The notes under the pieces were generated by a model. The model was not told where the DNA came from. It made no database searches and worked only from the letters and a program-made list of their open reading frames with translations. From Ophelia neglecta (taxonomy: Eukaryota), in the NCBI GenBank assembly GCA_965285935.1, contig OZ260665.1:54746001-54810000 (forward strand): a DNA stretch of 64,000 bases. Direction: 5' to 3'. Below are positions 12,645-42,881 of the stretch, piece after piece. The position numbers and the translations under genes are program-made. Positions within the stretch are counted from its first letter, which is position 1, and each line of letters opens with the position of its first letter.

Positions 12645-13184
12645 TTACTTATGAACAGAAATACTAATGTCTATCTTTTTCCTGCGAGGACGAGGAATAA
12701 AGGCCCCATTGAGGTCGAATTCATACCATGGATTGCTGGAATGTGTACCTTGGTAAGCGGTGGCTGGAACTGGCACTGGCACTGGTGTTGGGGCAGGTAC
12801 TGGTGTTGGGGCAGGCACTGGTGTTGGAGTAGGCACTGATGTTGGTGCTGGAACCGGAGTAGGCGATGGAGTGGGAACAGGTGCTGGATTCGGGGAGGGT
12901 GTTGGGGCAGGGGCGGGCACAGGAACAGGGGATGGCGTAGGCAAAGGAGTAGGCGCAGGAGCGGGTGTTGGTGAAGGAGAAGGACTAGGCATCATTGGCA
13001 CTGGAGCTGGAGGAGGCATCATCGGCACCATGGGCCCCGAAGCTGGGTGTGGGATCATTGGTATCATTGGGAAAGGAGTTGGAGATGGCCGCAGGTCATT
13101 TGGGATGTAATGATCATGGATGCCATTAGTAAGACCTACGCCTCCACCTGTCCCAGCGCCCACACCATTACCATTACCTTCGCC
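12645..13184 (-). CDS. In-frame C-terminal continuation of G1 beyond the TAG at 13185-13187 (179 codons, PAPT-rich, ending NPWY...PRRKKIDISISVHK)
   Basis: Same frame as the 13185..14726 ORF (13184 to 13163 is 7 codons). It ends in the motif shared with the G2 and G4 C-termini and is followed by a 3' UTR with AATAAA. Confidence 0.7.
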   Translation of the reverse strand, partial: GEGNGNGVGAGTGGGVGLTNGIHDHYIPNDLRPSPTPFPMIPMIPHPASGPMVPMMPPPAPVPMMPSPSPSPTPAPAPTPLPTPSPVPVPAPAPTPSPNPAPVPTPSPTPVPAPTSVPTPTPVPAPTPVPAPTPVPVPVPATAYQGTHSSNPWYEFDLNGAFIPRPRRKKIDISISVHK

Positions 13185-16100
13185 CTAACCACTGAAATGA
13201 CGGTAACCATCATCATAACCATGCCGCCCATCAGAGCCATAAGAATTAACTTGATAACCTCGAGGGGGATATTTCGGTTCATAGCTATGATAAGTATCTG
13301 AGCCGTAGCCTGAATGTTGCTCAGAGCCATAGGCATGATTTGAGTTAGGGCCATAACCAAAATGCGGGTCATGAACATCACTGACACCTTCCGTACAACA
13401 TGTGTCGTAGCGTGGACAGTACACAGTACCCGGAGCACATCTCAGTCTCCTCCACTCTCCATTGACACACCATTGGTAGAAATCTCTGTCGAAATCTGGC
13501 CTCCTGTGACCATCGATACATCGAAAGAAGGGTCGATTTGGTTTGAATGGACCAGGAGGCATTGGTGTCGGCATAGGTGTCGGCATTGGTGTTGGCATAG
13601 GAGTTGGCATAGGGGTCGGCATAGGGGTTGGCATTGGTGTCGGCATTGGAGTTGGCATTGGAGTCGGCATTGGCGTCGGCATTGGTGTTGGCATTGGAGT
13701 CGGCATTGGTGTTGGCATTGGAGTCGGCATTGGCGTCGGCATTGGTGTTGGCATTGGTGTTGGCATTGGAGTTGGCATTGGTGTCGGCATTGGTGTTGGC
13801 ATTGGAGTTGGCATTGGTGTCGGCATAGGAGTCGGCATTGGTGTTGGCATTGGTGTTGGCATAGGAGTCGGCATTGGTGTCGGCATAGGCGTCGGCATTG
13901 GTGTTGGCATTGGAGTCGGCATAGGTGTTGGCATTGGCGTTGGCATTGGGGTCGGCATTGGCGTCGGCATTGGTGTTGGCATAGGCGTTGGCATTGGAGT
14001 CGGCATTGGCGTCGGCATTGGTGTTGGCATAGGCGTTGGCATTGGAGTCGGCATTGGCGTTGGCATTGGAGTCGGCATTGGCGTCGGCATTGGTGTTGGC
14101 ATCGGAGTTGGCATTGGAGTCGGCATAGGTGGCATTAATGTGGGAAATGGAGGCATTGGCCCTGGCCTATGCTTAAAGTAATGCTTGTAATATGGAAGGT
14201 GAGGGTAAAAAGATCCGGGAATAATCGCTTTGCCTGGGAAGTAATTGAAGGGCGACAGTGGATGATGTCCTGTAAATGGTCCGGCGCCCGTATGTGTAGC
14301 TGTTCCGCCTCCGGCGCCGTTTGCCTGGTTCATCATGTTCATAATGTCCTGGACTGTCATAGAATCACCATTTGGAGTATTCACGACTGAAATGCCCCCA
14401 CTTCCTGGGTAGATGCTCCCAGCGCCCCAGCTTCCTACAGATTTAAATTTGTCATAACCATATCCAAAACCGTTCCCCAAGTAGGAGGGATATGGCATGG
14501 TGCCGGGAGCCGGTGTGGGTGACACGGTAGTGGTGGTTGTCGGCTGTGGCGTCACTGTAGTAGCAGGAGTCGGTGATGGCGTCGGAAGGGTTGTCGCCGG
14601 GGTTGGGGCCGGACCAGGACCCGGAGAGGGTGTTTGACCGTACCCATAACCAGGGTACCATCCTCCGAAACCTCCCGTATCAAATTTAGGGTGCAAAATC
14701 AAAGTTATCTCTTTTACAGCATCCACGGGATAAGGTGCTTGCCATCCTGCTGAGTTACCTGAAATAAAAGTTTGTTATAATAATCACATTAATATTAATG
14801 AAAAAGTTATTAACGCAATGTGTCCATATTCTTTGATGCAAATAAAGACCCGACCATTTACAAACATATAACAATGATTCACGAGAAAGGTGATGGTAGG
14901 TCTGTACGTATATCCGATCTGGCACCATCCCATTACACAGTGGTAAACGATGGAATACCGCTCCTTTTGTTTATTTAACACCCCTACACTAAACACATAC
15001 GCGTTGACAAGTTTATGAGTTTAGCTGCAGGGGGTAGAGCGATACAACTTTTATTGCTGTTAGATTTTGTATTCATGTCGCATTAGCCGAGGTTTTCCAT
15101 GATGACTCACCTAACAATCACTGGTAATTACACCAGAACGATTTGTTCAACACTTTGTACAATTAATTGTTTACATGCAATAAAAGTATGGGCGAGTAAT
15201 TATGATAACCTAGTACAAGTGATTTATTTTCTTTCTGATGTATCTGAATCATTCACAGGTCTACTGAATTTATTCAAACTATTGGTAATCCATGCTCGAC
15301 TTTCGATTTATCTGCTACTTTCTTAAGCCAGCCATTCAGGCAACATGTTTACCTAATGCAGCAGTTCGATAAATTAATTGACTACATATGTCTGACGTTT
15401 GGTTTAGATTCTAATGAAGATACATCGATGATTTTAGCTATAACATTTCATAAGAAATTATCTAAAGCAAAACGAAATGGAACATGCAACCGACTCAGCA
15501 ACTGAGCAATACAATTAAAGAAGTTTAGAGATTTAGGCGGACTGGACGCTACACTGTAAAAATGTTTATGCTAGTTGGCAATATCAAAATTGACGAGGTT
15601 TATAAATCCGCCAAATATAATAGTCAACAACATTATACTCTGTTACTTACGCTCTTCAACGTAAATATTCGCCAGTATTTATAACTCTGAAAATAAGTTA
15701 AGATTGTGGCCACCAACAACTCGCCAAAATAAATATTTTCACAAATAAACACCCAAGGAGATATAAACCGGTTGACATAGCTGTCCGAGAAAATAACAAA
15801 TTTCTTGTGTTGAAAAGGCATCTTTATGAAGCAGTCCTTAAACTTTCAAATGCACGATAGAGTGCTGGTATATTTACCCTGTTAAGTTAAAGTTAAAATC
15901 CTTGACAGACCCATTTTCGTCAATATCAAACGAGAAACCGACTTATCATTTGTTAGTCGCCGCCAACATCGAATTTCGCTTAATTGAAAGTTATAAACAC
16001 TTTTTGAAGGCATGGTTTGCTCAGTCCCGAAGATATTTTACCCAGCATTTTTAGAGTATAAGATTGCCGAACTGATACATGCTACTATTTTTTTAATCAT

Positions 16101-16306
16101 CAACTTGACCAGTTGCCAGCATAAAGTTTTGAGCAGTATTCAGTCGGTAAAGTATGATCTTTTGTATATAATCAGACATGTTCTGAAGGAAAGGTAAGGC
16201 TGCTTAAACATGGTGATAAAAAGCGCAACAATGAAAATGAAAACTCACTACTTGCGAAAAATCCAACCAATATAGAAATTCCTATTAACAGCGATGTAGT
16301 CCCCAT
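13185..16306 (-). CDS. G1: secreted Pro/Thr/Met-rich protein with (PTPM)47 and a ChtBD2-like module; join(16249-16306, 13185-14758), 543 aa (723 aa if the TAG is read through)
   Basis: Exon 1 encodes [19 protein letters not shown] (signal-peptide-like), then A|GTGAGT donor. The acceptor TTTCAG|GT at 14758 is phase 1 and in frame with the ORF. Cys module at 13395-13520. Confidence 0.85.
13395..13520 (-). other. G1 ChtBD2/CBM14-like module CIDG...[29 protein letters not shown]
   Basis: Has the aromatic-x-x-C-x9-C-x-x-G-x-x-aromatic and C-x12-C spacing typical of peritrophin-A domains. Confidence 0.75.
13561..14124 (-). repeat. Coding 12-bp repeat, (Pro-Thr-Pro-Met) x about 47
   Basis: Read from the ORF; the variation I see is confined to synonymous positions. 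Confidence 0.95.
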
Positions 16307-16383
16307 GTTGTAGCCACCGTGTAGTCACACCGATACTAGAGTGACGACCGGAAACGGAATGAGTAGCCATTGTAGCAGACGAC

Positions 16384-16390
16384 TTTATAT
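16384..16390 (-). promoter_or_regulatory. G1 TATA box (ATATAAA)
   Basis: About 78 nt upstream of the ATG; an equivalent element is present in all four paralogues. Confidence 0.6.
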
Positions 16391-19300
16391 GTTTGAAACA
16401 GAATGAAATTATCATTCATCACAGGTTGATCGAACATAACTCGGGCTAGGGTGCGTGTGCGGATGTCGTGTGTTGGCTGGCTTCAGCCAGGTAAATTATT
16501 CAATATTAATTACATTGTAAAAATTACTTGAATAATATCAAAACAAGTTCGTTTAGGCGTCGACATCAACAAACTCCTTTTTATTGCATTTTGTCTGTTT
16601 CCCATTTAACGACACAATTTAAGTTGTTGAGGGGTTGAGTAAACTGTTTATTGGATAATTAACAGAAGGCTAACAATTTAGTAAAACAATAGAGTTCTTC
16701 ATCATGATGTTTTGAATGACCAGCACAATGTTTTTATGCAATGATTTAGGGCCAACAAATACATGGAAAAGCAGATGATATCTGTCACAAATATCACTTT
16801 TAGCAGTTCAACTTAAATATTCGCAACGTACTTGGTAACATATTATGGAAACATTTATATTGATAATTAATTCTGCTCTTTCATCAAGGTGTTATGCCAT
16901 GATGTAACTACTTCCTATTGTGAGACACTACACCTTTAGCAATATTAATTAGCTGATTATACTGCAATGAATGCATTTTAATGTTCTAGTTATATAATAT
17001 AGACTTTAAGCAATGAAACGTTCATGGCCATTAGAACATTCCCTTGATTTGTTGATCCATTACTCATAGCATTGACGGATATGTCATTTATGCGCTAAAT
17101 ATTAATGAATTAAGTTATGTAGGATAGTCAAATAGGATTGGCCTATTTTCTTTTCACTTTCATACATTCATGCTATTCAATTTTTTATTTCTGTTCCCAT
17201 TTCTAAAGTGGGTTAGGTATGTGTCTTCAGATAATTTGACTAGGGAAGGCAAAGAATGAATTGAAATGAATATATATCGAATTGGAAAGAATGTGAAACA
17301 AGGTTTCATCCGAAGATACGCGGCCGAGGTGAAGAACATTTCCATCCCCGAGACGGATCCAGTCCCACAAAAAGTTGTTAATATCAGTGTGAGAAATGAG
17401 GCGATTAAGTTACTCATGGATATGCAACCATTTCCCCGGCAATGGTATAGGCTCAGTGCTCTGGTGAGATACATTTACTGTAGTATAGATATGCCATTGT
17501 ATATGTCTGGGAATTATGATAAAAAGTCGGCAAAGATACCTACATTTGACATAGTTCTACTACAGAAAGGCAAAAATTGATTATTAATGTTCTGATGATG
17601 CTATTATTTAAATTCAATGGCATACATTAACTAAATGCGACCGAAAACCGCTTAAAATAAGATATATGTACGAAGGACTGGAAGACTAAGGTGTTACAAA
17701 AATGCACGATGTAGGAGCCAAAGTAAAACGCGATCTCCATATTCGCTGTAGTTCTACCAAGAAAGTATAAAACTTACTGTTGCTACCCATAGGGCCAACA
17801 GTTTTTCATCGTATTAATAAATAAATGATACCCTCATCTGTGCCAGTTGCGTATAATTGTACTCGAACTATAAGTAGACGAAATGATGTATTAATGGTTT
17901 TATGATTTACCATTTAAGGATCTCTCTTTGTACCAACAGGTACATGTATCATAATTTATATAACTTACGCCACCCTTGAACACTTCTATATATATCATAA
18001 TTTCCAGAAAAATTGTAAAGCAAACAATAAGTTGGACGTTCAATATCATTAAATGTAACCTTATTTTCCGCTACAGTTATACATCCCTGCTATAGCATAA
18101 GGCGCTTTGGCAAACCCTTTAATTTGACAAAATAGGAAAATAAAACGCAGGTGGATTTCGTAGGTGGCTTTTTTCAGCACCAAAATTGCCTTAATGTACC
18201 TCAGGAATTTTTTAATGTTCAGATTCTGTTTTCATTTTGCCACTTTTTAATATTATTTCCCTGCCAACATCCCATTTTATCATGATCTGTCCAGGGCCCA
18301 TTGTCTTTACTTCGTCTTAACTAGTGACTTTGACATGCTGTCTTTTTCCGTTGTACAAGAATTCAACCAGTTTGTAAACAAAAAACTAAACAAGTACTAT
18401 AGTTTGTGTTCCGTCACTTAATTTAACCAACTGTTAAGACTACATAATTTTACATTACATACATCACTTCACGGTACACTGGTGAAAAACCAGGTGAACC
18501 CACCTGGGCGTATTTTAATTTAAAAATAAAGACTCTTGAATAATTTGAAGCAGTATAGACACCGGTAAACATACTTCTAAAGGTCTTTACAGCCTGTCGG
18601 CCTAATTGTAGGAATTTGTATTCGTCGTGGATTCCCCAGTGACTTCTATTCGCCACAAGAAATATACATAAATTTTGTCCACACTGCCTCTATACATTAC
18701 ATCGTTAACGTTATGCAACTCGTTACAACTGTATGGAGAAATGTTGACAAAAAAAGTCCTTCACTATGTGGTATGAAACTTTCAATTTTTAAACTCTACT
18801 ATGAGACTATTGTATATTTGCTAAATATGAATCAACATATTTGTTTGAAACGAAAACTACTCATTGGAGTCGGGTATCCATGAAAAGGTTCCTAATGGAA
18901 AAAGAGTCAAGGATACACCACGAGTACACCAATGTCGCCATCGAGCCACAGGAAGACAAAGGGTGCCCCGGTTGGATAATGGAGTGAAAGATATACCTTC
19001 TAATCAAACAAGGAAGTCACCGATTGTCTCTAGTGACAAGTTGGAAACAGAGATACACTAAGAGGCCTTCATTGGACCAATGCTCCCAAGGGCCTCTATA
19101 GTAACACAATTGAGTTAAGGAAACACAAGGAGGTTGCTAGTGGCACATTGGAGTCAAGGATATACCCTGATACACCAAGCTGAATGTTGTGTTCGATATA
19201 ATTTGATTGTTGTCTCTTCACAAACAAAGAAAAACATTCATGTTTAAAACTAGCCTACAAAAGGAGTAGAGACAAAGGGAGAAGTACGCCTACTGACGCA

Positions 19301-21821: not shown

Positions 21822-21984
21822 CTCACGTCAGCAGACAGTGCCTGGGGTTATGCCTCGAAGGGCATTCACGTCTGCAGACAGTGCCCGGGGTTATGCCTCG
21901 AAGGGCACTCACGTCAGCAGACAGTGCCCGGGGTTATGCCTCGAAGGGCACTCACGTCAGCAGACAGTGCCCGGGGTTATGCCT
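21822..21984. repeat. 43-bp GC-rich minisatellite, about 3.8 copies
   Basis: CTCACGTCAGCAGACAGTGCCCGGGGTTATGCCTCGAAGGGCA units start at 21822, 21865, 21908 and 21951. Confidence 0.95.
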
Positions 21985-22937: not shown

Positions 22938-22970
22938 TTTATTTACACATTCTGCAAACAATCGGACGGA
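22938..22970 (-). promoter_or_regulatory. G2 3' UTR: miR-184 7mer-m8 seed site (22964-22970) and AATAAA (22938-22943)
   Basis: The minus strand reads TCCGTCC, 20 nt, then AATAAA. Confidence 0.65.
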
Positions 22971-23172
22971 ACGTGTTCAATACTCAATATTAAGTTCATT
23001 TTTAATGGATTTTGACCATTTGAGTGTAAAAGGAGAATGTGTTCTCCAGATCGGTATACGCATTGCATTTATCACAGTCGTATTGAGGACAGGACGTATC
23101 ATATATACTTATATTAAATCTCTAGTTAAGCAGGTCAATGGACAGCTTCATCATTGGTAAAAAGAGACTTGA

Positions 23173-26100
23173 TTACTTATGTTGATTTAAAGAAATGGTT
23201 ATATCAAGATGCTTCTTGCGGGGGAAAGGTGAATAGCCGAGATGCCAAGGGTTCTTGTATTTGGAAGGTTTTAAGGCAGACGACATGCCATTCCCAGTGC
23301 TATCATCTTCTCCCATATTATCGCTTGTCATGCCATAGCCGTTGCCATTCCCATCTGTCACTGTCATACCGCTATTGGTCATTCCTTTTTCCCCGTCGTC
23401 TGTAGCAGATCCATACCCATATCCATTGGTTTGTCCATTTGTCATTCCGTTACCATTCATCATGCCCTGGTTATCCCCGTTGTCTGTAGCAGATCCATAC
23501 CCATATCCATTGGTTTGTCCATTTGTCATTCCGTTACCATTCATCATGCCCTGGTTATCCCCGTTGTCTGTAGCAGATCCATACCCATATCCATTGGTTT
23601 GTCCATTTGTCAATCCGTTACCATTCATCATTCCCTGGTTATCCCCGTTGTCTGAAGCAGGTCCATACCCATATCCATTGGTTTGTCCATTTGTCATTCC
23701 GTTACCATTCATCATGCCCTGGTTATCCCCGTTGTCTGTAGCAGATCCATACCCATATCCATTGGTTTGTCCATTTGTCATTCCGTTACCATTCATCATG
23801 CCCTGGTTATCCCCGTTGCCTGAAGCAGATCCATACCCATATCCATTGGTTTGCCCATTTGTCATTCCGTTACCATTCATCATGCCCTGGTTATCCCCGT
23901 TGTCCGTAGCAGGTCCATACCCATATCCATTGGTTTGTCCATTTGTCATTCCGTTACCATTCATCATGCCCTGGTTATCCCCGTTGTTTGTAGCAGATCC
24001 ATACCCATATCCACTGGGTTGTCCATTTGTTTTCTGTTGGCTGTTTTCGTTACCATAGCCCTTGACCATACCCTGTGTCTTTCCAGTGCCCATTATCCCT
24101 CCGTTTCCTTGCTGCCCCTCACCTTCAAAGCAGCAAGTGTCGTATTTTGCACAGTAAATGGTGCCCGGGGCGCAACGTAACCTTCTCCATTGTCCAACCA
24201 CACACCACTGGTAGTACTTCTTGTTAGGGTCGGCCCGCCTCGTATTTTCTCTACAGACCTGTTTGGCACTGTGAGGCGGCAGAGAGGGCAATTCGTTTGG
24301 ATTCGTACTGGGAGCTGGGGTTGGAGCTGGGGTTGGCGCTGTAATAGGTGCTGCCGTGGGTGAAGGTGTCGTGGCGTCCGTTGGATAGGCGTTTTGTTTA
24401 GGGTTGGCATCAGGAGTCGGGGAAGGATAGGGAGTTGCATGAGGAGCAGGCGCCTGAGCATCAGTTGCGGAGGGCATTTCGGCTTGTGCAGGAGCAGATT
24501 TCGGAAGATAAGGTGCTGGATATGAGGCTGGGGTCGGTGCACTACTCCCGGTAGTAGTTTCCATTGAAGATCCACCGTTGGTTCCATCGGAGTTGGATCC
24601 AACCGTCGACCATGACGCATCCATTTTGCCAAAGTACATATGAGGAACGAAGGCGCCGGGTAGTAAAGCATGAACAGGCATATATGGTATCCCGCCCATG
24701 GATTGAGCCATGTTCATGGCTCCGGCGCCGTCCATTGATTTCATGCTATATCCTGCTGTTTGCATCATGTTGCCTTTGTCTGTTTGCGCTTTTTCCCCCG
24801 CGCCATCGCCATTTGATTCAGAGGGGCTTTGACCCTTCATATTGACCGACCCTGCCGATCGATCTCCGTACCCGTATGAACTGTATCCATTGCCAACATG
24901 TCCGGCATTGCCATTTCCTTTATTACCATTGTCTCCATCTCCATTACCGTTGCCGTATCCGGATTCAGGCGCCGGGATCCCAGTAGAAGGTGCTGAATTA
25001 GAAGCTGGAGCTATAGCCGGGTAGTCCTTTCCTTGCATCATACCACTTCCTCCATTAGACATCCCATTGCTATTGCCGTACCCAGAATGAGGAGCCTGGG
25101 TACCAGTGGATGGAACGGGAGCCTGGCCGGGGTAGACCATGCCATTCATATTCATACCATTCATCATACCATTCATTTGGTTTGTGCTTGAGGCAGATGG
25201 CCCTTGACCCATCATATTGACCGATCCTACCGGTCGAACTTCGTATCCATATGAACTGTATCCATTGGCAACATGTCCGGCATTGCCATTTTCTCCATTA
25301 CCGTTGCCGTAACCGGATTCTTGCGCCGGGATCCCAGTAGTAGGTGCTGGAGTAGGAGCTGAAGCTATAGTCGGGTAGGCCTTTCCTTGCATCATACCAC
25401 TTCCGCCATTAGTCATTCCATTGCTATTGCCGTACCCAGATTGGGGAGCCTGGGTACCAGTGGATGGGAGGGGGGCATGGCCGGGGTAGACCATGCCATT
25501 CATATTCATGCCATTCATCATACCTTTCATTTGGTTTGTGTTTGAGGCAGAGGGGCTTTTACCCATCATTTGTGAGGAATCTGTAGGTTGAACTCCGTAT
25601 CCGTATGATCCGTATCCATATCCAACGGGCCCTTGGTTTGTATTGTCTCCGGCGTTGCCATTTTCTTCCATACCGTCTTGACCATTTCCATTACCGTTGC
25701 CGTATCCGGATTCAGGCGCCGGGATCCCAGTAGAAGGTGCTGGAGTAGGAGCTGGAGCTATAGTCGGGTAGTCCTTTCCTTGCATCATACCACTTCCGCC
25801 ATTAGTCATTCCATTGCTATTGCCGTACCCAGATTGAGGAGCCTGGGCTCCAGTGGATGGGACGGGAGCATGGCCGGGGTAGACCATGCCATTCATATTC
25901 ATACCATTCATCATACCATTCATTTGGTTTGTGCTTGAGGCTGAAGTGCTTTTACCCATCATTTGTGAGGAATCTGTAGGTTGAACTCCGTATCCGTATG
26001 ATCCGTATCCATATCCAACGGGCCCTTGGTTTGTATTGTCTCCGGCGTTGCCATTTTCTTCCATACCGTCTTGACCATTACCGTGTCCGTATCCGGATTC

Positions 26101-28277
26101 AGGCGCCGGGATCCCAGTAGAAGGTGCTGGAATAGGGGCTGGAGCTATAGCCGGGTAGTCCTTTCCTTGCATCATACCACTTCCTCCATTAGACATCCCA
26201 TTGCTATTGCCGTACCCAGAATGAGGAGCCTGGGCTCCAGTGGATGGGACGGGAGCATGGCCGGGGAAGACCATGCCATTCATATTCATACCATTCATCA
26301 TACCATTCATTAGGTTTGTGCTTGAGGCAGATGGCCCTTGACCCATCATATTGACCGATCCTACCGGTCGAACTTCGTATCCGTATGAACTGTAACCATT
26401 GCCAACATGTTCGGCATTGCCATTTTCTCCATTACCGTTGCCGTATCCGGATTCAGGCGCCGGGATCCCAGTAGAAGGTGTTGGAGTAGGAGCTGGAGCT
26501 ATAGTCGGGTAGTCCTTTCCTTGCATCATACCACTTCCGCCATTAGTCATTCCATTGCTATTGCCGTACCCAGATTGGGGAGCCTGGGTACCAGTGGATG
26601 GGAGGGGGGCATGGCCGGGGTAGACCATGCCATTCATATTCATGCCATTCATCATACCTTTCATTTGGTTTGTGTTTGAGGCTGAAGGGCTTTTACCCAT
26701 CATTTGTGAGGAATCTGTAGGTTGAACTCCGTATCCGTATGATCCGTATCCATATCCAACGGGCCCTTGGTTTGTATTGTCTCCAGGGTTGCCATTTTCT
26801 TCCATACCTTCTTGACCATTTCCATTACCGTTGCCGTATACGAATTGAGGCGCCGGGATCCCAGGAGTAGGTCCTGGGGTAGGAGCTGGAGCTATAGTCT
26901 GGTAGTCCTTTCCTTGCATCATTCCATTTGCCATTCCGTAGCCATAACCATACCCTGATTGAGGAGCCGGGGTAACAGTGGATGGGGCGGGAGCCGGGTT
27001 TGGATTGGTCATGCCATATATATTCTTGTTTTTCGTCATCCCTTTCATGTCGTTTGTATTTGGGGTGCCAGGGGTTGGACTCGTCATACCTTTCCCACCT
27101 TTGTTGTCTTCATTCATCATCATGTTGTTTTTCATCATATTAGCAGAAGGACCAGTAGGGTATGGTTGCTTGGGTGGATTGTGCACAACATTCATCATCT
27201 TCATCATCTGGTCCTTCATTTCATTTATACTCATGCCATGGTCTGGGTAAGGGCTTGGTACTTGGTCAGGATTAGGTGTAGTATCCGGAGTGCCGGCACC
27301 AGCTTCCATGTCAATAACACTGCTGATAAAATACCCACCATAAAACGGGCTGTACTTATAACCGGGAGGAATACCTATAAAATAAGACAAAGATCCCTAT
27401 AATTGATTGCGTAGACTTATGTTATTGACTTTCAACACAACAATAGTTCACCTTATACTTATCAAAGTGGTTAATGCAAAGAGTGTTCTATTGCTGTTAC
27501 AGTCTTATATCAAATTGTACAAGGTGTAATAACAAGAATAGTTATTGGGTGGTAACTCATGTCCTTATATATGAAGCACCATCTTGGATCTCTATTGAGT
27601 GTACATAGGATGTAAGCATACCTAGTTTTGCCATCCTGGAGACACTAAAATCGTTGATTTTGTGGCGTAATTTAACTAGAAACACTAATTTTTGTATTTT
27701 CTCTCCAATGAAAAAATATTCTAGACTTAAATAAAATAAATTCAGAAAAAGACCGTTTTTGTTTTGTATTCATTTGCTTTTTTATTTACAGATTACATAA
27801 AAAGAACAGCTTAAAGCATGCACTGTGCTTTTAAGATCGTTCATATGTTGAGACCTACAAAAATGTCGCATGCATGTTTTATAATACAACTATGGACGTT
27901 GATCAGTTGATTGGGAATGTGGACCAACAATTAGTCTTTCGGGAGGTGTCCAGTGAACTTTTCCTTTAACCTTCGGTGTCGGGATCAAATTTCACCGGAC
28001 ACCTTCCCTGGAATCAATAGTTTGGCCTAGTTCGAATTTCCAAGTCAAGGTCCATGACAGTTTACTAGCTATCTAACATGGGAGACTCCTTAGTCAGGGT
28101 ACGTTAGGGTGAAAAAAGGTCCTGATGGACATTTGTTCCCGGGGTGGTGGATAAGGGCTCACAGAAGTACAGGTGCTGAAATAAACAAAAAAATAAACCC
28201 TACGAAAAGACGTACTTACCCCTGACAAGCGTTCCTGCTAGCATAAAGAGAATTATGAATGGCGAAACAGTCCACAT
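23173..28277 (-). CDS. G2: secreted Gly/Asn/Met/Tyr/Pro-rich repetitive protein with a ChtBD2-like module; join(28220-28277, 23173-27374), 1419 aa
   Basis: Exon 1 encodes MWTVSPFIILFMLAGTLVR, then G|GTAAGT (58 nt, the same length as in G1). The acceptor TTTTATAG|GT at 27374 is phase 1 and in frame with the 1405-aa ORF. Cys module at 24130-24255; ends PRKKHLDITISLNQHK. Confidence 0.9.
23398..24030 (-). repeat. Coding 84-bp (28-aa) repeat GYGYGSATDNGDNQGMMNGNGMTNGQTN, 7 copies plus a partial
   Basis: Counted in the translation; the 84-nt period is visible (23401, 23485, ...). Confidence 0.95.
24830..26960 (-). repeat. Coding long repeats (~350-390 nt units of two types) in G2
   Basis: The GDNTNQGPVGYGYGSYGYGVQPTDSS block occurs at ~26767, 26026 and 25633; the EVRPVGSVNMMGQG block at ~26350 and 25210, with a diverged copy at ~24850. 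Confidence 0.9.
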
Positions 28278-28346
28278 GTTTGTAAAGGATCTGTTTGCGA
28301 TCAGACCATCAAAGGATATTGTGTGACCCTCTATTGCGGCAGCAGG

Positions 28347-28354
28347 TTTATATA
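28347..28354 (-). promoter_or_regulatory. G2 TATA box (TATATAAA)
   Basis: About 70 nt upstream of the ATG at 28277. Confidence 0.65.
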
Positions 28355-30590: not shown

Positions 30591-30638
30591 CTTTAAGTCT
30601 AGGACACAAGAAAGCTTTCTTGTGTCCTAGCTTTAAGT
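30591..30638. mobile_element. 32-bp perfect palindrome flanked by an 8-bp direct repeat (minimal DNA-transposon relic)
   Basis: CTTTAAGT-CTAGGACACAAGAAAGCTTTCTTGTGTCCTAG-CTTTAAGT. Confidence 0.7.
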
Positions 30639-33508: not shown

Positions 33509-33544
33509 TTTATTCTTATTCACATTATTCACAAGAAGGACGGA
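33509..33544 (-). promoter_or_regulatory. G3 3' UTR: miR-184 7mer-m8 seed site (33538-33544) and AATAAA (33509-33514)
   Basis: The minus strand reads TCCGTCC, 23 nt, then AATAAA. Confidence 0.65.
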
Positions 33545-33821
33545 TATTTTATATTACTTATATAATATCGGTAGATTCCGCTCTTTCTAATATTCAGCAA
33601 GCTGGATAACATGTCGGCTGTCTTTTATGTTTCGTTGTCGGTAACCAGTTAAGCAAAGTCTGAAGCAGGAGGTTATTTCCCCAAACACCTTTCCTTATTG
33701 AGTCTCCTCGGCAGGTTTGTCTCGGACGATTTTTTTTTCTGAATAACAGAATATAATGATACTCTTGCATTGCGATTTGAACGAGTAATAATTATGTATT
33801 CATTCTGCAGTGTGTAAAATG

Positions 33822-36255
33822 TCAATCTCCTGATTTGCCGTACGAGTTTTCGCCTACATTGTAGACACAGATGAAAAGGTCACTGTGGAAGAGTGTCCCG
33901 TGAGGACATGACATGTTGGTCCAGACGCCATTGTGACACACCTGGAACTCGCTTGCCGAGTAATAGACCGGCCTGATATCTCCGTAGATACAGTCAGTGT
34001 TTCCGGGAGGCATCATAGTCATACCGGGGCCAGGAGTGGGCATTGGTGTCGGGGGAGGAGTAGGAGCTGCTGTTGGAGCCGCAGTAGGCGCGAGGGTCGT
34101 GGTCGTAGGCGGAGTTGGAGCCGGGGTAGGGGCTGGGGGAGGACCATTCGGGACCCACCATGGGTAGGAACCCGGTGCCTGTCCTGCGGGATGGACAGGA
34201 GGAAAACCATAAGGCATACTGGGTGGTGCAGGAGTTTGGGTGGGAGGTGATGGGGTAGGGGCGGGGGGAGATGGTGTCGGAACAGGGGGAGATGGGGTTG
34301 GAGCAGGGGGAGACGGAGTAGGTGAAGGGGTCCCCGGAGGAGGGGGTGGTCCGCCGTTGTCCGGCATCCAGGGATTAGCCGAGTCATCACCCCATGGAAA
34401 ATTAAAGGGGAAGTAGTGATGAAGGTTGTAGATGTTAACAGGAGCTTGCCCGGGAGAAGGAGAGGGACCTTGCCAGATAGCGGGGACCGGGGAAGGCACG
34501 GGGGTTGGAGTTGGAGAGGGGGAAGGCGGAGCGGGAGTTGGGGTTGGTGACACAGTCGTGGCAGGTGTAGGGGCTGGAGTGGCCGGCATTTCCGGAGAGG
34601 GGCCTTGTGCCCAGAGATTATTCTGCCACTGGTTGTCTATTAACCACTGGTTGTCACCTGCCCATGGAAGCCATGGCATTCCCCAAGGGTCTGGGTAGGG
34701 GGAAGGTGCCGGAGAAGGCATTGGAGACGGTGCTTGTGTTGGTGATGGAGTTGGAGTCGGAGCGGGGGTAGGCGCTGGAGTGGGCGCTGGAGTAGGCGCT
34801 GGCGTGGGCGCAGGAGTGGGGGCTGGTGTTGGGGCAGGAGTAGGGGAAGGTGGCGTGGGTGTCGGCCCAGGCATTGGTCCTGGCACATGATATGGGTCAT
34901 AGCCATTATGAAAGAAATTATAAGGATTATAGTATCCTGTGTCTTGAAATGTTTGATACAATTGGGGGTGGTATTGACCAAAGCCTGGGTAGACTCCGGG
35001 TCCGGGCTCTGGTACTGTTGGAGGTGGTGGTGGAGGAGGAGTCGTTGTTGTGGTTGTCACAGGTTGTGGTGTGGTGGTTGTCGTTGTCGTTGTTACCGGA
35101 GAAGGCGTTGCAGTGGGGGGTGCAGTTGGTGGCAGAATATTCCACTGGTTGCCGTCGTATAGCGCCGGTTTCCAGTCCCAGCCCTGCCATGCTGGGTTAC
35201 TACTGCCCCACGGGTCGGGCACGGCCGGTTCCGCGGTGTCCTGGACAGCCGACTGAGCCACTGGCACCCAACCATAGCTACCGTCCTTCTGTCGACCTAG
35301 CTGAATAGTGATTTTCACACCTGTAAAATAGAAATCATTAAAAGTGTAGAAGCAGCAACATGGGTACAAGGCATGATGATAATTGATTCTCATCATCATC
35401 ATCATTATTGTCTGTACATAAGAATATTACACCAAATTAATGATGCTATCAACAACTAGAAAACAATGATACAAATTAATTATTTGTAGAATCATAGCTA
35501 TAACTTTTATAGGCTGCAGATAGAGTGAAACATTTTTAGAATGATTTGTTCAACAATGGTTTTAATGAATGTATTTTGATATTTGAAGTTTTAAATTTCA
35601 TTGTTTCTGTTGTGGCACGTGAAAAATGTCAATAGTTCAAACACATTTCAAAATAACTGCAAAAATTCCCTGCCAATTTATATATGTCTATATAAATGTA
35701 TGCATGTCACGAGGTTCTCATTTTCAACAAGCAGCATCTCAATGAACCTCATAATACAAGAAATCAAACCGAATTTATATCTTATATTGTCAGACTTATA
35801 ATTATGAGTATTTACCAAGACAAAATCTAACGACGCAAATTTATTAGAATATTTTAGAATTATAACTGTCCCTCCGGACTCCTGTATTATTACTTTTACT
35901 AAATACACATCTGTTATTCTTTGAAAATTAGAATGTTTTTATATGCCGAAGCACGATATGTCGATTTCGCCTGGCAGTTGAAAAACAGTGCTTAGATTCT
36001 ATCTGCTGACATATAAGACTCATTTCCCTTCAATTCCTTCCCAGTCATAATCTGACACGATCCATAATGGGGTACACGTGTAGAAATAGAAATATGACAT
36101 TTCTCTTTGCAAATCCTGGGTGTGAAAAACCATAGGTGCTTGTATGTAGAACTTATAGATGAAACAACAATGCACTTACTTTTAGCGACGGTTCTGTGGA
36201 TTTCATCTTGTATGACTATTATTCCAAGGATGAGATAGACCAAATTCGTTCTCAT
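33822..36255 (-). CDS. G3: secreted Pro/Thr/Trp-rich protein with a C-terminal 4-Cys ChtBD2-like module; join(36180-36255, 33822-35320), 524 aa
   Basis: Exon 1 encodes MRTNLVYLILGIIVIQDEIHRTVAK, then A|GTAAGT. The acceptor TTTTACAG|GT at 35320 is phase 1 and in frame. Module CIYG...FQVCHNGVWTNMSCPHGTLFHSDLFIC at 33867-33992. Confidence 0.85.
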
Positions 36256-36314
36256 TTTGAGTCAGATATAAGACCGACAATGCGGCCAAATGGAACAAAA
36301 AGCTGTGGGTGTTG

Positions 36315-36322
36315 TTAATATA
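36315..36322 (-). promoter_or_regulatory. G3 TATA-like box (TATATTAA)
   Basis: About 60 nt upstream of the ATG at 36255. Confidence 0.45.
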
Positions 36323-37536
36323 CCGTAACTTGGCAAAATCTATTGATCAAAGCTAATTTAACAATTTCATTGTGATCAAACTATTTAATATTCCGTCTAG
36401 GACGTGTCCTGGCTTTTATGTGTTCTCGATGTTAAATGATTATATTTATTATAATATTGCAATGACTACCAATGAACGGTGAAAGTTTCAATGATATTTG
36501 ATAATGAGTGGTCTACCCGGAGGGCTCCGAGCCTGCTATTAACCGTTACCAACTCTAGAGAGAGGAACGGTCTGTTATAGGGGCAATGACCTACGGGTGA
36601 GGGTCGGCATCATCCCTCGTCTCATCACATGTCAGCTGATTGTAATCGTGCGATGAATTCTAGTAATTATTATAGCATTATTGTAGCATCATTTGTCAAA
36701 GCATTTATAACAATTAGCCTCCCTTGTTTATACATAATGTTGTGCTCGAGGCCACCTCGATGATATTAATATTATTTATAATTATTCGAACGTCATCACC
36801 CTGTTAGTGATAATAAAGAAGTATTTTGCATTAATTTAAAATCAAGGTTACATGAAGACTTATCCCAATTCTGATAAAAGCGATGGAAAATGTTCAATGG
36901 ACTGTTGGGGTAAGCTGCAAGTTATACCAGTAAACTACGCTTTAATAGCATGATCTATAGTGTCTATTTTCAATGGCTTTTGTTGGGACAGAAACCCTTT
37001 GAAAAAAGGAGTTAGGCGTGTTATTAATTGACCGGTTAATGAAAAGTACAATCACTACATTACACGCCATACATATCTAAGAAAACTTGCTATCTGCTAC
37101 ATATAATGCGAGGTTTGTCAGCCATTAATTTTTGCTTAAAAATATAGCAATCGAGTTAATATCCCAAACTAAGGAAAGTAACAAAACTTTATAAATAAAA
37201 GCCAGAAATTTTAGTGGCTGTGTTATCAACCCTTACCCAATTTTATACTGAAGTTAGATTACTTCTTTTATTAACTAAACAATACCGTAATGCAAGGAGA
37301 CGTCACATTGATAAACCTTAAAATTAACTTCGAACACATTTAAAACATGGGCCTACTGGTGAATTAAAGTGTAAATCTTAATAGACATAGGCCTAATAGA
37401 CACGGGCCTACTGATGAAAATTTTACCTTTCATTCACCAACCCTCCAGTATTATACCTATGACAATCTAGAGCTGCCCTAATTGACGTTTTAGCTTAGTT
37501 TTATAATCTATTCTGACGTTACGCATTTGGCGTGAG

Positions 37537-37907
37537 ATGACTAGCCACATGGCATGACACGACTAGCCACATGGCATGGCATGACTAGCCGCATGGCATG
37601 ACATGACTAGCCGCATGGCATGACACGACTAGCCACATGGCATGGCATGACTAGCCGCATGGCATGACATGACTAGCCGCATGGCATGGCAATAATAGCC
37701 GCATGGCATGACATGACTAGCCGCATGGCATGGCAATACTAGCCACATGGAATGACACGACTAGCCGCATGGCATGGCAATACTAGCCACTTGGCATGAA
37801 ATGACTAACCGCATGGCATGACATGACTAGCCGTATGGCATGACATGACTAGCCGCATGGCATGACTCGACTAGCCGCATGGCATGGCATGACATGACCA
37901 GCCACAT
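37537..37907. repeat. 22-bp minisatellite (ATGACTAGCCGCATGGCATGAC), about 17 copies
   Basis: Read directly. Confidence 0.95.
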
Positions 37908-39481
37908 TGATCTATTGAGCCATAAGCAGCAGAAACACGACAACAGTCAATTATACAGATGGTCAGTCATTACATTAGTATAACGTAATTCGTTAATAAA
38001 TGTGGCCAACCTTCCACAATCAGATAAAACAACGTGAAAATGACAATTAAAATGACAATGACATTGAAATTAATTGTTAATAATTCAATACATAGAATCT
38101 TAAGGCCCTCACATTTAGTGTTTCCAAGGGATAACGGCACATAATATGTGTATGCTGTGCGGAAATTCAAGTGCACTGATATAATTATATGATAGTTTGG
38201 TTCCTTAAGAGAAAAATAGACATACTGGTATAAATTTCAGGTTATAAATGCGTCCAGCGCACGGTTTTAGAAAATGTACATGTCGCGGTATTAGTAACTC
38301 CGCCCTTTCATGTGACAGTAACATCTGACCATATGCCAATTGATGGGTTTTAAAACACTGCTTGTGCTAGACACATGCATGAATATATAACGCAGCCAAA
38401 GCAAAGAGTCTAGCTCTCTTATTACCCCCAAAATATGCAAAAGTTACCGGTGAATTGCCTCCTTCTGTAACTAGCAGTATAACAACATAACTCAATGTCG
38501 TTGAAATGTGTATTATCTAACATAACTGTTTGAAAATGGCCCACCGAAGAAGTAGCACCCGTCAACCACTACATAGATAAAACAATAACATGATGTAGCT
38601 TTTATTTGGCCTCCGCTTTTTTCGTGACCGGAGCTGAATGATCAGCAGTCCGACATGGCAGTGGCGTGGCATACTGGCATACTGGCTTACTGATAAGATA
38701 ACTATGGAGGGAAAGTGGCTAAACCGTTGTCGAAAGGACGTACAGGTGTGAAGGAAACTGCCCAGTGTGCTGGTACTTTTCTACTGGCATGGCAGTTGTT
38801 GGCTGTACACTTGCAGCATAACAGAGATGCTGCAGCGCCAATGGTGGTTTTCACCCGAAAACAAAGACGCAAAGAAAAGTTGTAGCTATCCTGGACAGAA
38901 AAAGGGTATAACACCATTCTATCCAGGTTTTTCTACTGATCTCTCTGTCCCCTATAGGGAAACTATCCAATGATAATGACGTTGCTCATATGGGTCATCT
39001 AAGGGGTAACACTCATATGCCCGTGTCACTAATTGTCATCGAGAATTGGACAACACATTTGGAATAGGCCTATACCTCTTCACTTAGAGGAATCACGACT
39101 CCCCTGGCTCAGTGTCTCCACTTCTTTACCCAAGTTTTAATTAACCATCAATTTCCAGTGAATAAAAGTCATCTAAGAATTTTCCTATCAATATGTGGCT
39201 TTACATAAAAGTCATTCAAAAGAATATGTGTCTAAACTGCAAAGTTAGGCAAATACCAATACAAGGCCTCCCTACATATTATATGCCGATATTTGAATTA
39301 ATACATGAGGCATCATATTCCACGCTTCCATGCATATGATTTAATTTACATGCTTAACCTAAAATAATATAGATATTTCTTCCTTTCATCCTGTATCTGG
39401 TAACTATCGTGCTTTATTTCCTAAATTTGTGTTCGGAAAAGGAAGCGACCCAACAAAGAACTTAATTTCAGCATATGATTT

Positions 39482-39541
39482 TTTATTTATTCAGTAGTAC
39501 TACATAACAACGTACATGGGAAAATACCAATTAAGGACGGA
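39482..39541 (-). promoter_or_regulatory. G4 distal 3' UTR: miR-184 7mer-m8 seed site (39535-39541) and overlapping AATAAA signals (39482-39491)
   Basis: The minus strand reads TCCGTCC, 43 nt, then AATAAATAAA. More proximal AATAAA hexamers exist at 39727-39732 and 39892-39897. Confidence 0.55.
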
Positions 39542-40211
39542 TTGTTCATTACTTATATATTTATATATACCTACATGTTTGCAAGGTTGTGATATACTGG
39601 TTTAGGAAAGAGAAACACCTATAAGAATTCATTAAGCAATATAAGAAAACCGGAAGCATCTTGAATAGCAATAAGTGTAGACGTAGTCGTCTGCCAAATA
39701 ATTGTATTTAATGCTTTTTGTGCTTATTTATTTCCTTTAAAACATAGGAAATTACCTGCAAAGAAAGCAGAAAAGCCTTTGACTAATAGTAGTGAAAAAG
39801 TAAATAAATAATAGTATTCCATTTGTAGTACAATAGGGTTGTGTCGACTGTGTTCAATCATTGTCATCAATTTTGTACAGACGCAGACCCTTTTATTGTG
39901 GGTTCTTGTGGTTGTGCGCGTATTAGACTGCAATTTCAATCATGTAGGCATGTCACATCATGAGTTAAGATAAAGTTGCTGAATGTTAATGAATTTCCCT
40001 TAATACATCAAATTTACCCATCGATGTAAAATTAAACTTCGATCAATGCACATGTTCTGCACATGTTTCTCTGTTATACCTGCCGGCAATAGATATACGA
40101 ACACATCGCGGCATCCGTGACCAATACAATTGTGATCTTGCAATTACAGACTATAATATACCCAATGAAATGTTTAACTAAGTATTTGTTCGTGATCTAC
40201 CCCGTGTCTCT

Positions 40212-42808
40212 TTACTTCCTGCGACGGCGTTTTTTGTGAACATCAACTATGATATTGATTTTGAATTTCTTCCCGCCAATTTTTATGATATTTTCGCTAG
40301 CAGAGGTTTCTCCAGTATTCCCCACTGATGCCATACTAGGTTTAAGAACATCGGTCGCTTCCTGTGGGGTTTCTGGTTCCTCGATAGCTATAACAACTCC
40401 TTCCCCGACTCTGTTTTCACTCGATGGTTCTGTATCAGACATTACTCCCATCAGAGGCGGAGAAGGCATTGGCATGGTCATAGGCATTCCCATGTTGGGC
40501 TGCTCTTCCATTTGCCCCATATCTTGGGACATACTCATTGGCATCATCATCATCATCATCTCCGGGGTCATACCACCCATTAAATTGGGCTCGGACGAGG
40601 CAGGATCAGTTTCTGTTAAGACGGCATCGTCCTCACCCACATCTTGGTCGTCATCTTGTTGTTCTGAATTCTGATCCTCTGTCTCACCGGATTCGTCTTC
40701 CAGCGATTCATTATCTGATGTTAGTTCATTTCCTTCCTCGATCTCGGTATCTCCAGTGAGAGTTTGGATATTATCGGTTTCTCCGCTGTTTATTATAGTC
40801 ATCATAGACATGGCGCCCTCCATGTCACCGGCTTTCAACATGTCCATCAACATTGTCATCGTATCTGGCATTCCAGTGTCTTCTGGTGGTGGGCCTGTAG
40901 TGGTAGGAAGCGAAGGATCAGAGGTAGTAGCAGAATCCTCACTTTCTTCATGATCATCAGTAACATCGCTGTCATCAACCATGGCAGCATTGGCCGTGTT
41001 ATTTTCATCACTACTTTCTTTTTCTTCAGCCGATTCCACGGCATCGTCTGCATTAGACTTGGAATCGTCGTTGCTTGTTGATTCTTCACTATCATCGGTG
41101 TTTATAGTGGTGGCTTCCATGATTGTCAAATCTTCCATGGTCTCGCTGTTTTCATCCCCTGCACTTTCGTTACCTTCTGTTGAACTCTCGGCAGTTGCAT
41201 CTGTATTTTCTTCACTCCCAACAGGATTTGAGGTGTCTGCCCCAGTTTCATCGCTTGTTCCTACTTCTTGACTGGCAATGGCTATAGGAGTGCCTTCCTC
41301 CGACCTTACCCCAAAGCCATTAATAACCACCGGATTACCGTTAGCGTCTGCCACAACTTGGTTCCCGTTGCTATCCATCACCAATGACCCCGTGTTAAGA
41401 TTGCCCTGCGAGGCGACCAATGAGCCCGGTTGGAAGATCGGCAGGAAGTTTGCACCTGGAAACAGACCACCCTGCAGGAGGCCAGCTTGCAGAAAAGGAT
41501 TTAGGAGTCCACCGTAACCAAGGCCACCTAGTCCTGGTAAATTGGATAGATGGTTTATTCCCGCGTTAAAACCGTAGTTTAAACCATGCAGTCCACCTAC
41601 GCCCTGTTGATTATATATATTTTGGGGTGTTGTCCCCGTACTGCTGGGACGATAGACATGGCCTGATTTCCTCCTACAACAGCCGACGCTCGGAGAGCAG
41701 AATATGGTCCCTGGTGCGCATGACCTGATTTGATATTTTCCGAAAACACACTCAAGATAATTTTTATTTGTTGAGGGGTCGGACCGGCGCGTGCCAGTGT
41801 AACAGTGAGGGGAATTGGCGTTAAACCCTGTTGTTCCTTCTAGGGATGCAAGCGTTGCCACTGCCTGTCCACTTCGACTGTCACTCCCGCCTTGACCATC
41901 GTCTTCCCCAGAACCGTCGGGGACGCTGCTACCATTGTCGTTGTTGTCACTCGCCTCGCTGCTTCCTGCAATGAAAAAAACAGTAGGTATAGAGTTCAAA
42001 AAGTCAATTCTCTGGCTTTGGATAACCTGTTCTTGGAACTATCTTTCCAGATCTTAATACCTTTGAATATACTATTAGGTGTAAAAAGCTATTTCCACCT
42101 ACATTCTCTATTCCGATAAACATTAAAATGTTCCTTTACCATTCCTCGCAATTAAGTCATAAACGTTTAAATTAAAGGAGACAATCCGTGTCCTTTAAAC
42201 ATGACAAATTATATACCTACTTTATTTTCACCCAGTATAATTTATCGTCATTTTTGTTGTTGAGTTAGTTCCCCTATCATTGGTGTATTTTTTTTTTAAT
42301 TTCCTTTAAAAATAAACTAATATATGAAACCTCAAATTAATTGAGTTGTTTCGCAAATACACTGAGTCCTTCTTTGACACATACAAATAAAATTATATTT
42401 TCATCTCGATCATTTTATAAAGGTCTTTAATATGAGTCAAAAAAGCCGGACATACAGGTAAATAAAACCAAATGTACCGGCAGATATTTACTTTTTATTG
42501 AAATTGAAATATTAAATGCAAATCAAATAGATTATTCAAAAAATAAGGAAATCAAAAGTATATTAATCGGTCATCGAAAACTGCATCAACTACAAACGAC
42601 GATAAATATCATTTCAGACAACACCATAGAATAGCATTAGGCCGTAAAAACAGATCAGGGGATGAGAGTGGTTCTAGGAAATGTCGCCAAGACTGAATAA
42701 TAAAAAAAATTACGTACCCGATATCGGCATCGCCCTTGCATAATCACGCCCTAGAAATGTGACTCCGATTAGCAGCAGACATATCCAAAATGTGCCCCTC
42801 GTAATCAT
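40212..42808 (-). CDS. G4: secreted acidic (Asp/Glu/Ser/Thr) and Met-rich protein with an N-terminal ChtBD2-like module and polybasic tail; join(42718-42808, 40212-41965), 614 aa
   Basis: Exon 1 encodes MITRGTFWICLLLIGVTFLGRDYARAMPIS, then G|GTACGT. The acceptor TTCATTGCAG|GA at 41965 is phase 1 and in frame. Cys module at 41676-41804; ends KKFKINIIVDVHKKRRRRK. Confidence 0.88.
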
Positions 42809-42874
42809 CGTTATCAAGATCCGACAAAATTTATCCAAGTGACAAAATTGTAACGTTGACGGACATAATATCCA

Positions 42875-42881
42875 TTATATA
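42875..42881 (-). promoter_or_regulatory. G4 TATA box (TATATAA)
   Basis: About 67 nt upstream of the ATG at 42808. Confidence 0.6.

Follow-up and report, generated by a model that had tools for sequence, protein, structure and literature searches.

Organization of the gene cluster

The window, a 64,000-nucleotide (nt) stretch of the Ophelia neglecta contig OZ260665.1 (positions 54,746,001 to 54,810,000), was found to be AT-rich, with a GC content of approximately 35%, and to contain zero N. Four GC-richer blocks coincided with the positions of four long open reading frames (ORFs) on the minus strand. These belong to four tandem genes, here named g1 to g4, which are predicted to encode low-complexity proteins with one divergent chitin-binding (CBM14-like) module each. 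All four were found to follow a common plan in which a TATA-like box is followed by a short signal exon and, after a phase-1 intron, by a single large exon. Each signal exon begins at an ATG, encodes a hydrophobic core and closes on a consensus phase-1 donor, and the frame is restored by a pyrimidine-rich acceptor, which puts the start of the large exon at 14758, 27374, 35320 and 41965 in g1 to g4, respectively (Table 1). Judged by eye from the hydrophobic cores and from plausible small-residue cleavage sites, the four proteins look secreted.

When both strands of the whole window (128 kb of strand) were scanned for an ATG with a hydrophobic core and a phase-1 GT[AG][AC]GT donor within 42-110 nt, precisely the four signal exons of g1 to g4 were recovered and nothing more. 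As the scan criteria were chosen after the four exons were known, this result shows specificity and is not an independent test. No match was obtained in an Rfam scan of the window.

An earlier note on this DNA had described one architecture for the four genes (a signal exon of 58, 58, 76 or 91 nt and a phase-1 intron) and one orientation, and exon sizes, phase and orientation all agree with that description. It had also placed the TATA boxes 60-78 nt above the ATG; boxes are present in all four genes, but their starts were measured at 83, 77, 67 and 73 nt for g1, g2, g3 and g4, respectively. The single large exon that it gave to each gene holds for g2, g3 and g4 but not cleanly for g1, where the exon is cut by an in-frame TAG codon.

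Table 1. Positions of the cluster genes, their parts and the neighbouring TPR-repeat gene in the window
Feature	Position	Strand	Remarks
g1 long ORF	12645-14726	-	
g1 TATA-like box	16384-16389	-	TATAAA; start 83 nt above ATG
g1 signal exon	16249-16306	-	58 nt; ATG 16306; hydrophobic core; phase-1 donor GTGAGT
g1 intron	14759-16248	-	phase 1; 1490 nt
g1 large exon up to TAG	13185-14758	-	523 codons; PTPM array 13558-14131
g1 CBM14-like module	13377-13535	-	6-Cys variant; 19.9 bits against Pfam CBM_14
g1 tail beyond TAG	12645-13184	-	same frame; open 179 codons
g2 long ORF	23173-27390	-	
g2 TATA-like box	28349-28354	-	start 77 nt above ATG
g2 signal exon	28220-28277	-	58 nt; ATG 28277; phase-1 donor GTAAGT
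g2 intron	27375-28219	-	phase 1; 845 nt
g2 large exon	23173-27374	-	1399 codons + stop; G/N/M/Y-rich repeats
g2 CBM14-like module	24112-24270	-	6-Cys variant; 13.9 bits against CBM_14
g3 long ORF	33822-35405	-	
g3 TATA-like box	36315-36322	-	TATATTAA; approximately 67 nt above ATG
g3 signal exon	36180-36255	-	76 nt; ATG 36255; phase-1 donor GTAAGT
g3 intron	35321-36179	-	phase 1; 859 nt; acceptor within the mechanical ORF
g3 large exon	33822-35320	-	498 codons + stop; P/T/A-rich; conserved Trp patches
g3 CBM14 module	33825-34004	-	C-terminal; 4-Cys type; 33.9 bits against CBM_14
g4 long ORF	40212-41999	-	
g4 TATA-like box	42876-42881	-	start 73 nt above ATG
g4 signal exon	42718-42808	-	91 nt; ATG 42808; phase-1 donor GTACGT
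g4 intron	41966-42717	-	phase 1; 752 nt
g4 large exon	40212-41965	-	583 codons + stop; acidic; Met runs
g4 CBM14-like module	41658-41816	-	near N-terminus; 6-Cys variant; 17.9 bits against CBM_14
TPR-repeat gene, divergent from g4	46624-50074	+	exon ORFs 46624-47277, 47826-48056, 49826-50074; Pfam TPR_12, TPR_1, TPR_2

A divergent CBM14-like module in each protein

All cysteines of every large exon were found to fall inside one module of approximately 45 residues, and a six-frame scan with a family hidden Markov model (HMM) recovered four modules in the whole window, one per gene. Searches were made with single exons, g1 being used as the two pieces flanking its TAG codon. All four modules matched Pfam CBM_14 (PF01607, peritrophin-A), for which the cut-off is the gathering score of 22.1 bits. 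The g3 module was the only one of the four above this cut-off by itself (33.9 bits, or 29.2 bits for the whole exon), and three relatives described below, P0075, P0147 and P0142, were also above it, with 22.7, 26.4 and 29.8 bits, respectively. No domain besides the CBM14 type was found by Pfam in the four large exons, VWA and laminin-G being absent. An assignment to CBM_19 was rejected, as its matches were sub-threshold and overlapped the CBM_14 match.

The canonical six-cysteine pattern was not kept. Compared with chitinase CBM14 domains, Cys 1, 3, 4 and 5 are retained, Cys 2 is absent and there is none at the position of Cys 6. Cys 2 and Cys 6 form a pair in canonical domains, which would explain the joint loss of both. 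Modules of the g3 type have four cysteines, and those of the g1/g2/g4 type add one cysteine after GTx[FY] and a second next to Cys 5, giving the pattern C-x16/17-C-x9-C-x6-C-x5-CC. The aromatic positions [FY]xxC, Gx[WYF] and GTx[FY] were kept in all 13 of the 13 aligned modules and line up with the aromatics of chitinase CBM14 domains. In a tree of the modules, the 4-Cys and 6-Cys clades stood apart with good support and little else was resolved.

When a profile of the four modules was compared with the PDB, it matched the CBM14 chains of chitinase and chitotriosidase and Aplysia EHEP; the match to squid beak DgCBP-3 (7bwe) was weaker, with an E-value of 0.11. The AlphaFold2 model of the g2 module, for which the 13 aligned modules were given as input, had a predicted local distance difference test (pLDDT) score of 87.5 and contained five strands. 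In a Foldseek search of the PDB with this model, the top match was the CBM14 domain of human CHIT1 (5hbf), with a TM-score of 0.73-0.78 and a root mean square deviation of 1.2 Å over 44 columns for chain A. The best matches were all of the CBM14 type (5hbf, 8in6, 6so0, 4zce, 2mfk, 6bn0 and 1dqc), and those after CHIT1 included Aplysia EHEP, Der p 23, Blo t 12, Avr4 and tachycitin. The Foldseek E-values were weak because the domain is small.

By profile and predicted fold, the module is a divergent member of the CBM14/ChtBD2 fold, and the one chitin-binding-like module that had been noticed earlier in each protein is borne out as a ChtBD2/CBM14 relative. Of the two profiles that the earlier note had named as a check, CBM_14 held above its cut-off for g3 but not for g1, g2 and g4, and CBM_19 gave sub-threshold matches only. 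The modules probably bind chitin. A different ligand, such as a polyphenol, another glycan or a protein, for which the CBM14 fold would have been co-opted in mucus, cement, egg-coat or adhesive components with no relation to chitin, is rather improbable. It would suit the loss of canonical Cys 2 and Cys 6 and the new cysteine pair in g1, g2 and g4, the scores of these three modules under the Pfam cut-off, and the place of the polyphenol-binding Aplysia EHEP among the best sequence and fold matches. However, the aromatics typical of CBM14 are conserved throughout the alignment, the g3-type modules and several relatives are above the CBM_14 cut-off, and the top structural match is a chitin-binding domain, that of CHIT1.

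Low-complexity bodies

The g1 body was found to contain 28% Pro, 15% Thr and 11% Met. In g3, Pro makes up 29% and Thr 13%, and 18 Trp are grouped in patches, whereas g4 has 17.7% Asp plus Glu together with runs of Met. The g2 body is rich in Gly, Asn, Pro, Ser, Met and Tyr. A mucin-like composition rich in Pro and Thr is present in g1 and g3 (28-29% Pro and 13-15% Thr) and absent from g2 and g4. These compositions agree with the earlier description of bodies that differ completely (a PTPM polymer; GN, GYG and Met repeats; PAPT with Trp; and acidic plus Met-rich sequence).

The bodies contain tandem repeats of several kinds. The PTPM array of g1 extends over approximately 570 nt, and its copies are just 86% alike in DNA. 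In g2, a repeat at 23390-24030 consists of 7.6 copies of 84 nt (28-residue units) with 96% DNA identity, and a second repeat at 24938-26753 consists of five units of 354-393 nt (118-131 residues). The genes g1 and g2 were found to be collinear paralogues with modules 55% identical, in which a Y-x-P...PG-x-F-x-PH block is followed by a P/T spacer, the module, a Gly/Tyr region and the tail.

Two further features of the bodies were observed. The Met content was unusually high, 8-15%, in g1, g2 and the g2 orthologue described below. In g3 (33825-35318, minus strand) and its orthologue (locus L002, 9983-11434), WxxW motifs are conserved within the Trp patches; WxxW is the consensus for C-mannosylation.

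A terminal strand motif and the in-frame stop of g1

Every member has one stretch with I, L, V or F at positions i, i+2, i+4 and i+6 and basic residues on its flanks, and this is the sole such place in each protein. The stretch is terminal in nearly all members, being C-terminal in g1, g2 and g4 and N-terminal in g3. The motif is KKHLDITISLNQHK at 23176-23217 in g2, KKFKINIIVDVHKKRRRRK at 40215-40271 in g4 and KKIDISISVHK in g1, where it is reached only by reading past the TAG. In g3 the motif VKITIQLGRQK at 35286-35318 opens the large exon directly after the signal exon, and in the g3 orthologue LKITIQMGKR likewise stands directly after the signal exon. The layout of g3 thus has the strand at the N-terminus and the module at the C-terminus, and the layout of g4 is the reverse. 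The C-termini of the relatives P0075 and P0126 are similar to the motif, and in the two-module relative P0030 the strand lies approximately 20 residues ahead of the C-terminus.

In an AlphaFold model of the whole g3 exon, the mean pLDDT was 50, the strand was predicted with low confidence (54-66) and everything except the module was disordered. We infer that the terminal strand is an assembly or processing element. Pairing of the strand with other chains would let proteins with a single module cross-link chitin. Alternatively, the basic sites beside the strand may be where a convertase cleaves.

The TAG codon of g1 lies in frame at 13185-13187 on the minus strand. Beyond it, the same frame runs on to the family tail, NPW...RRKKIDISISVHK, whose motif lies at 12648-12680; this tail matches that of g2. 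The 179 codons open past the TAG and the likeness of the tail to that of g2 indicate that the downstream piece of g1 was coding until recently. The codon may reflect a recent nonsense change, or it may be one allele or an error of the assembly; read-through and a cryptic intron are further possibilities. For the cryptic intron, a frame-compatible GT...AG pair of approximately 150 nt can be drawn by eye over the TAG; its donor is weak and the piece removed is coding-like.

Relatives and conserved synteny

In an exhaustive HMMER search, 360 matches to the four-module profile were obtained at E ≤ 0.001, and the statements on relatives made here cover the best 150 of the 360. These were mostly multi-domain peritrophin-like proteins, in which scores sum over many copies. 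The variant signature or a g3-type module was found in P0075 (g4-like), P0142 (g3-like), P0147, P0126, P0030 and P0151 (two modules), and in small fragments. The single-module family-like matches were one annelid protein and proteins from ENA and JGI data, and the sole named one was P0147, the uncharacterised Capitella teleta protein CAPTEDRAFT_206728. The family, defined by the variant module, the low-complexity body, the terminal strand and the signal exon with its phase-1 intron, comprises g1 to g4 (g1 only past the TAG), and P0075, P0147, P0126 and the g3 orthologue also fit this definition.

P0075 and P0142 were both found to lie on one 82-kb ENA contig, ctg22787 (ERZ25069296). Read in the orientation of the cluster, this contig carries the TPR gene, which lies on the opposite strand, followed by a retroelement, then the g4-like and g3-like genes in that order, a second retroelement of DIRS-like type and finally a g2-like gene. 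The gene order and orientation are those of the window. The stretch compared runs from the TPR gene into the g2-like gene and ends inside the latter. The g2-like gene was called at 1445 residues, of which the first 944 are Asn/Met/Gly-rich with GYGYG and HQGYGPMSMM repeats. In the g3 orthologue, a hydrophobic signal exon that ends in a phase-1 donor precedes a single large exon; for the g4 orthologue, a candidate for such a phase-1 exon was found upstream. The retroelements that break the cluster on ctg22787 carry RVT_1 and a tyrosine recombinase (Phage_integrase) and look DIRS-like (L001, 3927-7306; L002, 12527-16353); no retroelement insertions were found at the matching places of the window.

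Between the window and ctg22787, the first exon of the TPR gene was 69% identical, and the modules of g4 and g3 were approximately 38% and 51% identical, respectively. The bodies hardly align, apart from short surviving islands such as the g3 Trp patches with several WxxW. In contrast, the amino acid compositions of positional orthologues were correlated (Pearson r of 0.83, 0.87 and 0.80 for g2, g3 and g4, respectively), compared to 0.19-0.67 for most non-orthologous pairs; the exceptions, at 0.80-0.94, involve P/T-rich bodies, namely g1 paired with g3 or with the orthologue of g3. That composition is kept while the bodies hardly align argues that the body type of each paralogue is under selection. 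The division of labour among paralogues proposed in the earlier note gains indirect support from the composition types kept by the orthologues (r 0.80-0.87).

The same gene order beside the same TPR gene, with modules only approximately 38-51% identical, indicates that the cluster is old and not species-specific. The earlier note had pointed to synteny by the TPR gene as a check, and the conservation found there, in another species, runs counter to its view of a lineage-specific toolkit. Its failure to recognise a named family agrees with the uncharacterised standing of the only named relative. Its mollusc and brachiopod frame, as worded, was not upheld: the one named relative is an annelid protein, and the best 150 matches included no named mollusc or brachiopod member among their single-module family-like proteins, the sources of the multi-domain matches not having been looked up. 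With this Capitella protein as the one named relative, the source of the cluster is most likely a spiralian and probably an annelid.

It is accordingly very improbable that the cluster is a recent tandem expansion confined to one species, its bodies having diverged through the turnover of repeats in that lineage only, although the four genes are tandem, co-oriented and identical in architecture, and g1 and g2 are collinear with modules 55% identical. The conserved order and the divergence of the modules speak against it, as do the separate, well-supported clades of 4-Cys and 6-Cys modules and the presence of a homologue in Capitella; moreover, the identity of just 69% in the TPR exon argues against ctg22787 being the same species. 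It is scarcely credible that the loci are not genes at all, the long ORFs being by-products of low-complexity repeats and the likeness of the modules a matter of chance. The repeat arrays do hold long ORFs open on the opposite strand too, but the cysteine and aromatic pattern is kept across species in a confidently predicted fold, the signal exons have consensus splice sites and the synteny is conserved.

Further members of the same family were observed in the ENA assembly ERZ25069859, namely two small modules of the 4-Cys type 3 kb apart (L005, 10001-10297 and 13148-13504). A protein of 322 residues in the same assembly (L004, 10001-10969) contains two modules of the 6-Cys variant and has its strand approximately 20 residues before the C-terminus. 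Protein searches by a 5-residue word index gave no match with the g1 module region, the full-length family alignment or the g3 module region; these blank results say little, because members share almost no exact 5-residue words and the full-length alignment was swamped by low-complexity words. An exact look-up of the g3 ORF product returned no record. When JGI metagenomes were scanned with the g3-type alignment, the pattern was matched, but none of the matches was confirmed as a relative.

Comparison with known chitin-associated proteins

The Capitella teleta protein CAPTEDRAFT_206728 (ELT97693.1; 'Chitin-binding type-2 domain-containing protein' in UniRef) is of the same family as g1 to g4. 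Its single module, of the 6-Cys variant, is located near the N-terminus, its body is long and of low complexity, and its C-terminus KNVKITISLGQHK is almost the same as the tail of g2 and the head of g3. Unlike the cluster, it has no second member within 10 kb on either side, and the composition of its body matches none of g1 to g4 closely (r ≤ 0.49). No mention of this gene was found in the papers searched, and it is not listed in supplements of a Capitella/Owenia developmental RNA-seq paper.

Insect CPAP1 proteins (cuticular proteins analogous to peritrophins) are secreted, carry one ChtBD2 in long low-complexity sequence and are thought to organise the chitin of an epidermal secretion. They are arthropod proteins whose domains keep the canonical six-cysteine spacing. 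The proteins g1 to g4 resemble them in having a single domain of the ChtBD2 type per putatively secreted protein, but differ in their non-canonical cysteine spacing, terminal strand and gene cluster; their family is spiralian, and no orthology with CPAP1 was found among the single-module matches within the best 150.

Peritrophins and invertebrate intestinal mucins share with g1 and g3 the combination of CBM14 with P/T-rich mucin-like stretches. In insect peritrophins and invertebrate intestinal mucins, CBM14 ties P/T-rich, O-glycosylated domains to the chitin of the peritrophic or mucus lining, and such a role for the cluster is unlikely but deserves serious weight. The module falls in the peritrophin-A family, g1 and g3 are mucin-like in composition, and the profile search ranked peritrophin-type proteins with multiple CBM14 domains at the top. 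However, peritrophins that cross-link chitin usually carry several canonical modules, whereas each protein here has one, making four in the window, and its cysteine pattern is non-canonical. Moreover, the Gly/Tyr/Asn/Met-rich body of g2 and the acidic body of g4 are not mucin-like.

Among hard or structural materials, squid beak DgCBP-3 (7bwe) and mollusc shell proteins of the Pif/BMSP type combine ChtBD2 with low-complexity sequence, as g1 to g4 do, and occur in a chitin composite. Unlike Pif/BMSP, the four large exons of the cluster contain no VWA or laminin-G. Hard-tissue proteomes of lophotrochozoans repeatedly contain ChtBD2 proteins along with low-complexity domains (PMC13425148). In the chitin tube of the tubeworm Paraescarpia echinospica, secreted ChtBD2 proteins are abundant, are major components and have expanded by tandem duplication (PMC8476170); in these terms they resemble g1 to g4, which are likewise tandem, probably annelid, putatively secreted and of the ChtBD2 type. 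Chaetogenesis papers and an annelid cell atlas named chitin synthase but no ChtBD2/low-complexity proteins of this kind. On these comparisons, g1 to g4 form an uncharacterised subfamily of their own within the CBM14 fold, outside CPAP1, peritrophins and Pif/BMSP.

Proposed function of the cluster

The explanation that we favour, at somewhat better than even confidence, is that the locus is an old syntenic cluster of four paralogues for secreted, largely disordered, chitin-anchored extracellular matrix proteins with one divergent CBM14 each. The structure built would most likely be an epidermally secreted chitinous one, such as chaetae, a tube or a jaw or pharyngeal lining. The signal peptide would route each protein into the secretory pathway, and the single disulfide-knotted module would fix it to nascent chitin fibrils. 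The low-complexity body would give each protein its own material property: P/T-rich spacers, probably O-glycosylated, in g1 and in g3, the latter with Trp patches; a cohesive or cross-linkable Gly/Tyr/Asn/Met-rich body in g2; and an acidic, cation-binding body in g4. The terminal aliphatic strand with its basic flanks would join the chains to one another or to another matrix partner, and through this linkage proteins with one chitin-binding module could still cross-link chitin.

Several observations weigh against this explanation. The g1 large exon is interrupted by the TAG codon. The modules of g1, g2 and g4 score below the Pfam cut-off; the canonical Cys 2 and Cys 6 are missing from them and an extra cysteine pair is present, and their chitin affinity may therefore be altered. 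Aplysia EHEP, a close structural match, binds polyphenols rather than chitin, and the P/T-rich, mucin-like bodies of g1 and g3 would suit a gut peritrophic or mucus role equally well. No confident docking of the strand on the module was found in the AlphaFold model of the whole g3 exon. Finally, promoter words common to the four genes and two orthologues were limited to A/T-rich TATA-like hexamers and were no better than in shuffles, a null result that neither supports nor refutes co-regulation.

A more specific form of the matrix explanation is doubtful. The cluster may encode the conserved protein core of the matrix in a chitin structure of annelids, such as chaetae or tube, in which the KITISL-type strand would be a new head-to-tail assembly element joining single-module chains on the chitin fibril. 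A redox or metal-binding function would come from the bodies, which are unusually rich in Met (8-15%). If true, g1 to g4 would be the first defined set of structural chitin partners in such annelid structures.

In both arthropods and spiralians, chitin matrices are well known to contain proteins in which ChtBD2 is joined to low-complexity sequence. For annelids, however, little has been defined of the proteins that accompany chitin in chaetae, jaws and most tubes, and the family offers a concrete, testable candidate set. The paralogues stay beside the same neighbour gene across deep divergence, and their composition type is kept while the sequence turns over fast. If expressed in chitin-secreting cells, the members would be markers and knock-out targets for the study of how chitin composites are built, and the cluster would also be a clean example of selection on composition instead of sequence.

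Other features of the window

At 61869-62213, on both strands, a Ser/Gly/Glu/Arg-rich ORF of 114 codons with overlapping opposite-strand ORFs was found, with no Pfam match. A GC-rich island at 10000-12000 (approximately 45% GC compared to 35% around it) holds long overlapping ORFs on both strands, of at most 240 codons and with no Pfam match, and may be a decayed mobile element. Two intergenic tandem repeats lie between the cluster genes, one at 21822-21984 (3.8 copies of 43 nt, 95% matches) and the other at 37528-37893 (16.6 copies of 22 nt, 84% matches).

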